Source: Schizochytrium sp. TIO01 (lineage: Eukaryota; Protista; Bigyra: Labyrinthulomycetes). Taken from it: a stretch of 64,000 nucleotides of DNA. The notes under the pieces are model-generated. The model made no database searches and had not been told where the DNA came from. It saw only the letters and a list, made by a program, of their open reading frames with translations. Positions 35,205 to 47,457 of the stretch are shown piece by piece. The DNA is taken from positions 4,040,845 to 4,104,844 of the forward strand of contig SMSO01000014.1 of NCBI GenBank assembly GCA_004764695.1. Reading direction: 5' to 3'. Within the stretch, counting starts at the first letter, position 1; every line of letters begins with the position of its first letter. The translations under genes were made by a program, and so were the position numbers.

Positions 35205-38200
35205 TCATGATTTTTCAATTTCACTAAGAACCTGACGAACCATATTGTGGAGCTCCTTAACCTCACTTGGAGATCCACCACTCGTCATGTCAACATAAAG
35301 AGGACTGATTCCCCACCAACCGCCAAAAAAACCTATCCACTCGCCTGGGTCAGTCATAGCCTGCTCAAGTACAACCGGAATCATTCGAACTGGAGACTTT
35401 CTCTTTACCAGGTACTCAAACTCGTAACGGCAGTAATCTGCTATTGTGCGGTCAGAGTTTACCTTCTCCATGTATTCCCGTGTAACAAAGACAACGCCCA
35501 CTTTGGAATCATCGATACCCTGAGTCATTATACGAGTAATCTCGCCGTGCTGCACCTCGTCCCGATCGAGCCAACATGATATACTATGATTGTTCTGCAA
35601 CTCATCACTTACACGGCATACAAGCTTATGCACTTTCTTATCTTCGCCCCAAGCGTGTGACAAGAAGACGTCATACTTCTTCTCTCGTTGTGCTGTTATC
35701 TTCGATTCCAACCCTTCGGCCTCATCTCTGTTGGCAAAAAACAACCGAAAGGATGACAGCCTCAACCTTTTGTTGCGCCCAACAGACGAGACCTTACCAC
35801 GCCGTGCCTTTGCCAGAACACTAATAGAGGCACAACTTTCATCATTTGTCGTACCGTCACAGCTCAAATACAACCTTGGATTCAATTTCTGTTTCATGAA
35901 AGCTTCATCTATTGATTGCAGTTGAGTGTGCAGTAGTTGTACAATGTCTGTTATTGGCCTCTGTAAATCGCTGCTTTCGTCTTCTTCATCATTTTCTAAA
36001 TACATGATAATACGACGTCGAGTATCATCCGGAACTAGGAGGACAGAAATGCCATCAAATATGATGCTTGCCGCATTTGCGTGCACCTGTAGAACCTCAA
36101 CGAGCCCTGCAGGGAATTTTGACACCATACTCGCAATAAAGCGTTGAAATACTCCTTTGGGGAAAAAGTCAAACTCGATATACACTAAAGCGGCGCCTTC
36201 AAATTCCGAAAAGAGACCCTCGAGCTCATCCTCAGAGATAGGTTTTAACAAACTGGGAATTAGCAAAGCTTCCTCTCCGTCCAAGTCTCCTATCCATGGG
36301 CTTCTGCTCGCCAGAAGCATTTCTGTCATGAGTTCAGAAAAGTACTTCACAAAAAAAGGTTGACCCCATAGCATTGACAGAAATAATTGACTTGCAACAC
36401 CGCGTTCCTTCCAAGTCTCTAAGTCAGCATACCAATCTGTTGGTATCTCAACTTCTGTAACTGCTTCTTTCATTTTTTTCACATGCGCCTTCATATGCAT
36501 TGGATCACAAATTACTCGTGACAAGTTGTCCAGCAGCCACTGAGGTTGCAGGATCACATAGTTTACCAGAACATCCGTAGAGGTGAGATGCACAATTACG
36601 CCCAGCTCGTGCATGAACTTCAACATCTCCGTAGCGTCATCTTTTGAAATCCCACAGGAACTTGTTGCAAGCTCATACACAGTATCAAGCTCCATGTAGT
36701 CTCTGTTGAGCATAAACATACGATCCAAGCAGAGAGACCATCGTAATGGTACCTCCTTCTTTACATATTTCTCCTTTGCAGCTGTAGTCATGAGAATCTC
36801 ACGAAGAAGCTCACAACGAAATGGGTCCCTCCGTTCGGTGTTGTCCAGAGGGTAAAACTCAAGTTTCTCTGTTTTGTTTCTCTCATGATGGAGGCCTTTG
36901 GCCTGAGCTAGAAGCACTCCCAACTCAGTGTCAACGAGATTTAGATCTTCCTTAGTATCCTGCAGAGCGTCGAGATATGTACCCACAAGAATAACCTTGG
37001 CTCCATTCGCATGTAAGCGTATCGAGTCTAGCCAGAATCGAATCGTGTTTAGTGCCGTCTCGCTGTCCTCCATTAACGCATAGTCAGAACAGTCCTGGAA
37101 ATTATCTTTTCCAATCACTTCTCGCATATCGAAAACGACCACATACACCCCGTAATTAGTTAGGAAAAGGTGATGCAAAGCGTAGAAAACCTCCTGCCCA
37201 CCGTAATCCCAAATAGAAAAACTAATATCGGTTTCAACCATTTTGTGGCCTCTCTCTTCCAGTTGAACCTTCACATCTGCCCTGTAAGATCTTATCACTT
37301 CCTTAGAATCAATCTTTAGCTTAGGAATATCATCTGATCGAAGTGCAGAAATGCTTGACTCCGAAACCCGGCACTTCTTTACAGGAACATCGTTCGAGAA
37401 AAGAGCCTGCGAAGATCTTGCAGCGAGATTGTCTTGCCCTTGAAATAATTGATGTTTTGCGAGAGCCTCATGGAGGTCAGCAGAATGAATGCCCGCGGGG
37501 TCTTCTTTCCAGTCCTTCGTGCGAATCACCTTGAGTTCTACACCAATGGTCAAGTCATGCTCCGCTACGAATGCTTGACCGAGTAACGTGCGAATAGTTG
37601 ATGTCTTGCCAGCGCCCCCCTTCCCAACTACCATCAGTTTCGCCCGGCCCCATCGCACTTTTTCATCTTTTAAGAAACCATTCAATGCAGACTTTGTGAA
37701 TTGGTCAACTATATCTTTAGTCAAATTTAAGCGGCCACCAATATAATCTTTCAATTCTTGTGGAGTCTCATTATCGAAAGCGCCACAACTTAAAAATTTA
37801 CGTAGGTCTTGAAGACTGCTTAGATATCAAGATATACAACTCTGATTTGTTAGTTTAAATAATTATACACATTTTGTTTGATTTCACTCAAAATCTTCAA
37901 TGATTTATAAATGTGTTCAAACTCACGTCATACTTTTGAGAATATGATTATTTATCAGCGCCGCATTCCCTACATTGAGGCCCTGGTTGCTGATATCGCT
38001 GTAATCAAGACTATTGATTTGATAAAAAAAATGGCAAGCAGTACATTATACATTGAAGATTACACATTGCACAATACATTACATTCGATACATGCATGGA
38101 TGGATGTGAGTGATCTAGGTTGACTTTCAGAATTTCATCATTGTTGTGTTGTCGTTTTGCTCTTTGTTCTATGCATACTCAACCAATTATCAACAATCAA

Positions 38201-47200: not shown

Positions 47201-47457
47201 CATGCATGCATGGACGTGAGTGATCTAGATTGGCTTTAGGATTTCATCTGTGTTGAGCTGTCATTTTGCTCTTTGTTTTAATGCATATTCAAGAATCAAC
47301 CAAACAAGCAATCGCATGAACTTGCGATTCAACAAAACAAAACAAGCGAACAAGCAAGCAAGCGAACTTACTCCAACGTTGTAGCGCCATTCTGAAGCTG
47401 TTCAATTGCAGCGGCAACACGTACAGCGACAGTGACAACACGTGGATGGTCTGACAT
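35205..47457 (-). CDS. Gene B: LRR(24)-Roc-COR-TIR ROCO protein (~1570 aa)
   Basis: Exon 1 is 47372-47457 (MSDHPRVVTVAVRVAAAIEQLQNGATTL). 84-nt LRR exons have low coordinates 47071, 46713, 46252, 45889, 45484, 45100, 44730, 44354, 43935, 43563, 43145, 42762, 42407, 42013, 41637, 41248, 40775, 40298, 39768, 39388, 38971, 38724, 38344 and 37927. Terminal exon 35205-37815 has Roc (KLMVVGKGGAGKTS, TIGVE, IWDYGGQEVFYALHHLFL, VILVGTYLD), COR (LKFMHELGVIVH, VILQPQWL, LLIPSLL, FFPKGVFQRFI) and TIR_2-like (YDVFLSHAWG, CWLD, GIDDS, CRYEF, MIPVVL) motifs. Confidence 0.88.
37779..39867. repeat. Apparently exact 1044-bp tandem duplication (37779-38823 and 38823-39867)
   Basis: Identical ORFs are offset by 1044 (37911/38955; 38534/39578); the junction at 38823 shares a single A. 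Confidence 0.95.
37920..47350. repeat. Tandem array B: ~355-530-bp intron plus LRR-exon units, more diverged than array A, with intronic (TCAA)n expansions
   Basis: Same unit motifs as array A; (TCAA)n runs at about 40012-40178, 40537-40655, 41014-41113 and 46480-46572. Confidence 0.93.

Follow-up and report, generated by a model that had tools for sequence, protein, structure and literature searches.

The window analysed here, a stretch of 64,000 nucleotides from contig SMSO01000014.1 of Schizochytrium sp. TIO01 (positions 4,040,845 to 4,104,844), carries on its minus strand, at 35205-47457, a gene whose predicted product joins an array of leucine-rich repeats (LRRs) to a Roc GTPase domain, a COR region and a C-terminal TIR domain. 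All coordinates are positions in this 64-kb window, unless a genome record is named, and all parts of the gene are on the minus strand. The gene model comprises 26 exons with a total of 4713 nt, in which a local count on the joined exons gave 1570 codons and only the terminal stop. It is built of exon 1, 24 exons that are each 84 nt long to the base, and a last exon of 2.6 kb, with one splice phase throughout.

An earlier note on this DNA, made from its letters, had held that an 849-aa open reading frame (ORF) begins mid-gene, extends upstream to an acceptor at 37815 and is joined in frame to 24 LRR exons, and this description stands. The ORF is present at 35205-37754 and its frame remains open up to 37826; the acceptor AG of the last exon is found at 37817-37816, and the exon itself starts at 37815, reading LQDLRKFLSCGAF. 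It is preceded by 24 units of the form AG + 84 nt + GT(A/G)AGT, spanning 47154-47071 down to 38010-37927, and AG and GT occupy the expected places in all 25 introns of the model. In each 84-nt exon the first base completes a codon and the last two bases begin the next one; the phase is thus the same at both ends, and therefore any number of these exons can be joined in frame. The linking phase is open in all 24 LRR exons, the remaining two frames being open in 5/24 and 0/24, and each of the 23 introns between LRR exons contains stops in all three frames.

An ATG at 47457 starts the 86-nt exon 1 (47372..47457; ATG + 28 codons + 2 nt), which is followed by a GTAAGT donor in the matching phase. 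Local alignment of the first exons of paralogues demonstrated that this exon (MSDHP..LEQL..GATTL + two bases + GTAAG donor) is conserved in nine paralogues as well as upstream of array A, a second LRR array of the window (23338-30878), the present copy having a 21-nt in-frame insertion relative to the homologous exons. The last exon (35205..37815) encodes a linker, Roc, COR, TIR and the stop codon (35205-35207). Its sole in-frame Met ahead of the P-loop is positioned 3 residues before the P-loop glycine, within strand beta-1, and the same situation recurs in 7 of 11 paralogues; judged from the sequence, the last exon is without a usable start of its own and cannot stand alone.

All 24 LRR exons were recognised by the pattern AG + 84 nt + donor. 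Single exons, searched one by one, matched LRR_6 (ribonuclease-inhibitor, RI, type) at E values between 2e-5 and 0.2, and for two degenerate exons no match was obtained. Exons 1-6 are located at 47071..47154 (a weak LRR_6 match, E 0.2), 46713..46796 (E 0.014), 46252..46335, 45889..45972, 45484..45567 (E 4.6e-4) and 45100..45183, respectively. Exon 7 (44730..44813) is degenerate and open, with the Asn of LxxN lost and an IPRRTSL tail, and is one of the two without an LRR_6 match. Exons 8-16 follow at 44354..44437, 43935..44018, 43563..43646 (with a GTGAGT donor), 43145..43228, 42762..42845, 42407..42490, 42013..42096 (E 1.2e-4), 41637..41720 and 41248..41331. Exon 17 (40775..40858) is an LPKSC variant in which the Asn is lost, and exon 18 (40298..40381) encodes the same peptide within a 477-bp unit that has a (TCAA)n intron microsatellite. 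Finally, exons 19-21 (39768..39851, with 24.7 bits and E 2e-5 for LRR_6; 39388..39471; 38971..39054, of a divergent LDYSDIS... type) represent the upstream copy, and exons 22-24 (38724..38807; 38344..38427; 37927..38010, a divergent terminal repeat without an LRR_6 match) the downstream copy, of a 1044-bp duplication. Microsatellites of (TCAA)n with 23-42 copies are present in introns at 40012-40179, 40537-40656, 41014-41121 and 46480-46573, and it is because of such intronic repeats that the units in mid-array reach the greater length of 477 bp.

Roc-COR and TIR domains of the last exon

The search with hidden Markov models that had been proposed as a check gave Roc (64.1 bits, cut-off 27; in 2 stretches), COR-A (44.0 bits, cut-off 35.3), TIR_2 (48.2 bits, cut-off 28) and TIR (25.5 bits, cut-off 21.3) on the last exon, in addition to the LRR_6 matches of the single exons; COR-B scored 14.3 bits by sequence. 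No Pfam match to NACHT or NB-ARC was obtained in the last exon at E ≤ 1, in line with the proposal that Roc-COR stands in the place of these domains.

The Roc domain (36945..37667, by Pfam) contains an insertion of ~90 residues, which is partly helical. Its P-loop GKGGAGKT (37602-37625), DYGGQ motif (37194-37208) and GTYLD motif (36969-36983) show that the GTPase motifs P-loop, DxxGQ and TxxD are intact; D183, G186 and Q187 are invariant in 45 relatives, among which conservation of G258, T259 and D262 is 90% or higher. The G4 motif is of the T-x-L-D type, as in LRRK2. The COR region, composed of COR-A and COR-B, was delimited at 35715..36812 by the COR-A match in Pfam and by structural alignment of the model. 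A Roc domain with G1, G3 and G4 motifs and a COR region directly after it place the protein among the ROCO proteins. The AlphaFold2 (AF2) model of the last exon, built on a 45-sequence alignment, has a mean predicted local distance difference test (pLDDT) score of 85.1, and its best matches in the PDB are LRRK1 (8e05, E 5e-20), the Chlorobium tepidum Roco (CtRoco; 3dpu and 6hlu), LRRK2 (8fo9) and the Methanosarcina Roco2 (MbRoco2), with alignment to the Roc-COR structures over ~700 columns.

The TIR domain (35208..35678) is recognised by both TIR_2 and TIR, exhibits the C-terminal motifs YDVFLSHAWG and DYCRYEFEYL, and was modelled by AF2 with a pLDDT of 91.8. The top Foldseek matches of the TIR model are AbTir (7uxu), SARM1 (7cm6 and 6o0u) and RPS4 (4c6r), all with a probability of 1.00, and the same probability was reached by RUN1, L7 and the adaptor TIRs MyD88, MAL and IL-1RAcP. 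At E ≤ 0.001 the model has 71 matches in the PDB; those listed are all TIR domains except two prokaryotic SEFIR domains and one of the IL-17R/ACT1 type. A phmmer search of the TIR piece against the PDB sequences gave marginal matches, the best with E 0.011. The putative catalytic residue is the Glu of CRYE (GAG codon at 35421..35423; residue 778 of the ORF and 1499 of the model), which in a sequence alignment pairs with the first E of WCWDELE in Cat1 and which 37 of 41 aligned relatives retain, with Gln in three others. The earlier note had described a TIR_2-like C-terminus that retains the Glu of the C..E helix, and had named a C-terminus failing to match or fold as TIR as the outcome that would speak against it; both the sequence and the fold match TIR, and the C-terminus is predicted from the model to be a TIR fold in which the Glu that serves NAD-cleaving TIRs is retained. 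Furthermore, Table S4 of 10.64898/2026.04.20.719644 lists the equivalent residue, Glu-1053, as catalytic in a Hondaea TIR. The protein with that TIR is closely related to Hondaea Roc-COR-TIR proteins, and a 12-residue stretch of the TIR was found in two relatives of the present gene, P0037 and P0038, each of them a protein with Roc, COR and TIR_2.

Variable repeats and a multigene family

The 24 LRR exons are of equal length, symmetric in phase and encode one repeat each, and thus correspond to exon cassettes. Amino-acid entropy over these exons is highest at positions 2, 3 and 5, which are the residues written x in L-x-x-N-x-I-G, and at the codon that the intron interrupts. With the L-T-S-L that precedes them, the positions make up the LxxLxLxxNx strand, which lines the concave face of RI-type LRR solenoids. 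The nucleotide diversity of this gene is 0.59 in the three variable codons, 0.50 in the junction codon, 0.23 in the introns and ~0.19 in the rest of the exon; in array A the corresponding values are 0.56, 0.41, 0.047 and ~0.05, its variable codons differing 12 times more than its introns (0.56 versus 0.047). The variable codons therefore change several-fold faster than their own introns, and this comparison, which is one of nucleotide diversity between codons and introns, points to diversifying selection, or a targeted process, as what may act on them. The variable sensor that had been proposed is hence found as an array varying at the codons of the predicted binding face.

The genome surveyed (64 Mb in 37 records) contains at least 17 full-length Roc-COR-TIR exons, this gene included, with identities of 42-100%, and 14 of them are without stops. 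Upstream DNA was inspected for 12 of the other 16 paralogues, and 84-nt LRR exons of the same phase were detected in 12/12, with strict counts ranging from 1 to 17 LRR exons. The order LRR-Roc-COR-TIR, present here at the DNA level, thus recurs upstream of every paralogue examined, in support of the earlier description of the architecture; LRR exons also precede copies that are only 54-55% identical and have different unit periods (338 and 357 bp). The Roc-COR-TIR exon has dN/dS values (ratios of nonsynonymous to synonymous divergence) of 0.34-0.45 versus its paralogues, the closest of which gives 0.45 overall and 0.29 in Roc. When the paralogues L002-L012 are compared with 35205-37815, the synonymous divergence itself (dS) varies several-fold among the Roc, COR and TIR parts within a single pair, e.g. 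for L002 0.038 in Roc versus 0.169 in COR, and such inequality among the domains of the same pair suggests exchange between subtelomeric paralogues, i.e. gene conversion or recombination among the copies at chromosome ends. Some members are damaged: the paralogue at C13:4008568-4011107 (+), 84-90% identical and apparently located at the neighbouring chromosome end, has two stops and a frame change, and paralogue L005 has one stop.

With regard to TIR domains in general, 22 of the 42 TIR_2 matches in the genome are accompanied by Roc-COR; NACHT and NB-ARC occur rarely. A 1238-aa open frame at C30:8392206-8393234 (+) has matches to both TIR_2 and NACHT; proteins of the type of the signal transduction ATPases with numerous domains (STAND) that contain a TIR therefore also exist in this genome, although rarely.

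Independent evidence for the architecture comes from the gene models of Hondaea fermentalgiana, in which the order LRR_6, Roc, COR-A, TIR_2 is found with 43-45% identity over the whole Roc-COR-TIR exon. These proteins (943-1099 aa) have fewer LRRs than the present one, and P0003, P0004, P0005 and P0008 are annotated as 'Leucine-rich repeat serine/threonine-protein kinase 2' or 'NOD2'. Since neither a kinase nor a NACHT is present in them, the names, which are automatic, are misleading; the LRR-Roc-COR-TIR architecture is thus already present in databases, misnamed, in the Hondaea annotation. In the literature, no description of thraustochytrid LRR-Roc-COR-TIR genes was found.

The LRR-Roc-COR core is shared with LRRK1, LRRK2 and the C. 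tepidum Roco; however, the present protein has neither a kinase nor WD40, and possesses instead the ~90-residue Roc insertion and a C-terminal TIR. The nearest conceptual parallel is offered by the candidate receptors of the LRR-ROCO type in brown algae (Ectocarpus and others), which are also stramenopiles and in which N-terminal LRRs are likewise followed by Roc-COR (PMC3341825, PMC11378527). In these genes each LRR is encoded by one exon whose length is a multiple of three, the exons are shuffled, the genes occur in clusters with birth and death of copies, and LRR residues exposed to solvent are under positive selection (PMC3341825, PMC11378527). In contrast, their C-termini consist of a conserved domain, transmembrane segments, a peptidase or DUF900, with no TIR, whereas the present gene has 84-nt exons of the RI type (LRR_6), a TIR effector and relatives at chromosome ends. 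A ROCO protein with a TIR, as here, is the TPR-ROCO-TIR of Chondrus crispus, mentioned in passing in PMC11378527, but its sensor consists of TPR in place of LRRs.

The TIR fold and its Glu are shared with SARM1, RPS4 and AbTir, and TIR domains likewise occur in plant TIR-NLRs (NLRs being nucleotide-binding LRR receptors) and in the animal and bacterial STAND NLRs. The NLRs combine a repeat sensor, an NTPase switch and a TIR; the present protein differs from them in that the switch is a Ras-like Roc-COR GTPase and not a NACHT or NB-ARC STAND ATPase, and in the order sensor-switch-TIR with the TIR at the C-terminus. As it contains no STAND domain, it is to be regarded as an analogue of the NLRs and not as one of their members, and as a ROCO protein.

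Proposed function and competing explanations

Taken together, the gene is best explained as an apparently intact member of a multigene family that occupies subtelomeres of an Aurantiochytrium-type thraustochytrid and encodes cytosolic LRR-Roc-COR-TIR proteins, acting as an immune sensor with an NAD+-cleaving TIR, and we would give this reading a probability of about 0.6. The organism is placed in this group by the HSP90 of the genome, which is 100% identical to an MMETSP0958 peptide with the organism label 'Auranti...' and 95% identical to its Hondaea counterpart; the assignment relies on that label and identity, as the taxon number in the header of the peptide denotes an unrelated fungus. The existence of the family is well supported by the sequences, and its role as an immune system is a proposal. 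The Chlorobium Roco has LRRs that fold back on Roc-COR, and its oligomer state changes with the bound nucleotide. By a comparable route, the concave face of the LRR solenoid would bind a variable and probably non-self ligand, which would free Roc-COR from an autoinhibited state and alter its nucleotide and oligomer state; the TIR domains, thereby brought together, would cleave NAD+, resulting either in a cADPR-type (cyclic ADP-ribose) signal or in NAD+ depletion. Most active eukaryotic TIRs produced cADPR-type molecules with NAD+ not depleted, and a clade in which thraustochytrid TIRs fall includes a Chlamydomonas TIR that produces 3'cADPR (10.64898/2026.04.20.719644). The encoding of one repeat per exon, in combination with the location at chromosome ends, would allow repeats to be gained, lost and exchanged among paralogues with the frame intact, and in this way the sensor would diversify. 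Of the NLR-analogous sensor, switch and executioner seen in this protein by the earlier note, the analogy as such is supported by the architecture, by conservation of GTPase and TIR residues, by the variable LRRs and by the lack of NACHT and NB-ARC, whereas the executioner part is one that we infer.

Several observations weigh against an intact gene with an enzymatic TIR, and the first of them concern splicing. The array ends in a perfect tandem duplication of 2 x 1044 bp (37779..39867), in which 37779-38822 equals 38823-39867 with zero differences, as defined by an exact match of 1045 nt at offset 1044. Each copy contains three LRR exons and, from the last exon, the acceptor and the initial 37 nt; a decoy acceptor near 38859 is consequently carried by the upstream copy, whose frame hits TAA after 20 codons, and a full-length product needs a splice from 38971 to 38807 over a 163-nt intron, past this decoy. 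In addition, the acceptor position used in paralogues runs into TAA in the present copy, an in-phase AG 23 nt downstream being needed instead, and the linker consequently differs from that of the paralogues. Consensus residues have been lost in the LRR exons at 44813, 40858/40381 and 39054/38010. Furthermore, no transcript-derived peptide of the family from the same species was found in two protein searches (with the whole last exon and with its first 274 residues), a weak negative in view of the length windows and possibly low expression, the database searched holding an MMETSP peptide identical to the HSP90 of this genome.

These features would be accounted for if the present copy were a young pseudogene or a mis-spliced locus of a real family, which has lost the ancestral acceptor and in which the decoy cuts most transcripts down to an LRR-only product or sends them to decay; the broken paralogues nearby (that on record C13 and L005) and the neighbouring array A, lacking a Roc-COR-TIR exon, could be read in the same way. 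Against this stand the 1570 codons without an internal stop, AG and GT at all 25 introns, a substitute acceptor that is in phase, and dN/dS values of 0.45 overall and 0.29 in Roc versus the closest paralogue. Moreover, the duplication, being 100% identical, is either very recent or an assembly artefact, and in the latter case, which may apply, the gene would have 21 LRR exons. We thus regard the loss of function of this copy as unlikely, and the reading as an intact immune sensor as preferable.

A second set of doubts concerns the enzyme. The 'Active' column of Table S4 is blank for the related Hondaea TIR, assayed as an isolated domain in E. coli, and likewise for TIRs of Clytia and Aphanomyces, whose likeness to the present domain (DVFLSH.WG and NC..EF.Y) was judged by eye (10.64898/2026.04.20.719644). 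ROCO proteins have many non-immune roles (PMC11378527), and the adaptor TIRs MyD88, MAL and IL-1RAcP are among the structural neighbours of the model. The protein might accordingly be made, with its TIR serving as an adaptor or scaffold, as in animal TLR/MyD88, or with a role outside immunity, such as self/non-self recognition or cytoskeletal or ectoplasmic-net signalling, and NAD would then not be cleaved. Against this, the Glu is kept in 37 of the 41 relatives, the best structural matches are the enzymatic TIRs AbTir, SARM1 and RPS4, and hypervariable codons on the binding face are typical for receptors of changing ligands. Isolated TIR domains, moreover, often need oligomerisation for activity. 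A non-enzymatic or non-immune protein is therefore considered rather improbable.

The arrays of the window resemble the LORE-TEARS of Aurantiochytrium limacinum, published as subtelomeric spacers (10.1101/2023.06.15.545109; Collier et al. 2023, Curr Biol). These are tandem units of 366-529 bp, bordered on one side by the 18S-28S cluster of the subtelomere and on the other by a 5S gene whose transcription runs away from the telomere, and those of 'Group 0', of ~385 bp, lie between 18S and 5S genes (10.1101/2023.06.15.545109). The layout of the window, with a telomere repeat, ribosomal DNA (rDNA) towards it, arrays and a 5S gene, matches that of a 'typical' chromosome end of A. limacinum MYA-1381, and the likeness, which is set by published descriptions and not by sequences, extends to the 385-bp units at 23338-30878 and the 355-477-bp units at 37927-47154. 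In the literature searched, LORE-TEARS were not found beyond 10.1101/2023.06.15.545109, and no description of them as coding was found; unlike the published spacers, the arrays here are read as exon-intron arrays of LRR genes. That the 355-480-bp units are non-coding subtelomeric spacers for chromosome-end maintenance, with incidental 84-nt open stretches and a separate gene in the Roc-COR-TIR ORF, is most improbable, since every one of the 24 units has a single open frame, with conserved AG and GT at a fixed distance, all introns are closed in three frames, single exons match LRR_6, variation is restricted to particular codons beside conserved introns, the units are preceded by a conserved exon with an ATG, the last exon is without its own start, and Hondaea possesses LRR-Roc-COR-TIR proteins.

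If the gene is read as an intact immune sensor, a wider and tentative proposal can be made, which we consider possible although doubtful: the LORE-TEARS at nearly every Aurantiochytrium chromosome end would be arrays of variable exons of contingency-type LRR-Roc-COR-TIR receptors, diversifying by exon duplication and ectopic exchange between subtelomeres, with TIRs that signal or kill via NAD+-derived nucleotides when a virus (e.g. the resident mirusviruses) or another invader is sensed. Such a system would be an immune system convergent with the NLRs and would operate with a Ras-like GTPase switch. Persistent mirusviruses are known in such a thraustochytrid (PMC12606086). If the model of the gene holds, repeats published as enigmatic subtelomeric spacers would gain a coding function, and the diversification of receptors would be linked to chromosome ends, a link also seen in parasites with their antigen-variation families. 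An easily grown, transformable heterotrophic protist would then offer a tractable sensor-switch-TIR family in which Roc-COR replaces the STAND ATPase, with a bearing on how often the design of repeat sensor, NTPase and TIR arose. The idea developed for the LRR-ROCO genes of brown algae would likewise be extended to a second stramenopile lineage, and the missing effector domain supplied.

Chromosome-end setting and neighbouring features

The window begins with a telomere-type repeat at 1-323, consisting of ~65 copies of CTAAC (reverse complement GTTAG); a search for the telomere repeat TTAGGG found none, the end repeat being (CTAAC)n. The window starts at a chromosome end despite its location at 4.04 Mb of record C13, and the broken paralogue of that record, oppositely oriented, lies ~30 kb before it. 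A telomere repeat in mid-record with an inverted paralogue ~30 kb away makes C13 resemble a chain of several chromosomes.

Three tandem arrays with units of 370-371 bp occupy 705-5149, between the telomere repeat and a retroelement. Their size and position fit the published 'Group 2' LORE-TEARS, and no LRR-like exons were seen there. The retroelement (6637-11619, plus strand) is a copia-type long terminal repeat (LTR) retrotransposon with an intact 1660-aa ORF containing RVT_2, integrase and gag-pre-integrase, and has its insertion site between the 28S gene and the repeats on the telomere side. One complete 28S-5.8S-18S rDNA unit follows at 13995-19520 (minus strand), with transcription towards the telomere.

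Array A (minus strand) contains, within its 385-bp units, 20 LRR exons of 84 nt and of the same phase at 23406-30878, and has its own conserved first exon, the homologue of exon 1 being near 31500-31700. No Roc-COR-TIR exon was found between array A and the 18S gene, and the array is presumably an LRR-only gene or a truncated copy. The region upstream of it (31501-32083) is 68% identical to the region from the 5S gene to exon 1 of the gene described above, part of the 5S included; as no 5S was detected there by Rfam, it is probably a decayed copy of a module of 5S gene and first exon. A (CAAG)121 microsatellite is found beside this upstream region, at 31040-31524. Between array A and the 3' end of the LRR-Roc-COR-TIR gene, at 33152-33787 (minus strand), two more 84-nt LRR exons of a different subtype (..GTEGCAALAEAL..) are present, one of them with an internal stop.

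On the other side, a 5S rRNA gene (47876..47994, plus strand; Rfam RF00001, 96.5 bits) is arranged head to head with exon 1 and is transcribed away from the telomere. 5S genes with 99-100% identity were found upstream of several paralogues (L018:2560-2687, L019:6496-6620 and others), and the 5S gene and the first exon of the receptor thus appear to constitute a repeated head-to-head subtelomeric module. Beyond the 5S gene, at 54566-55680 (minus strand), there are six short LRR_6-like exons, five of 84 nt and one of 83 nt, separated by introns of ~80-290 nt, which presumably belong to another, more diverged LRR gene.

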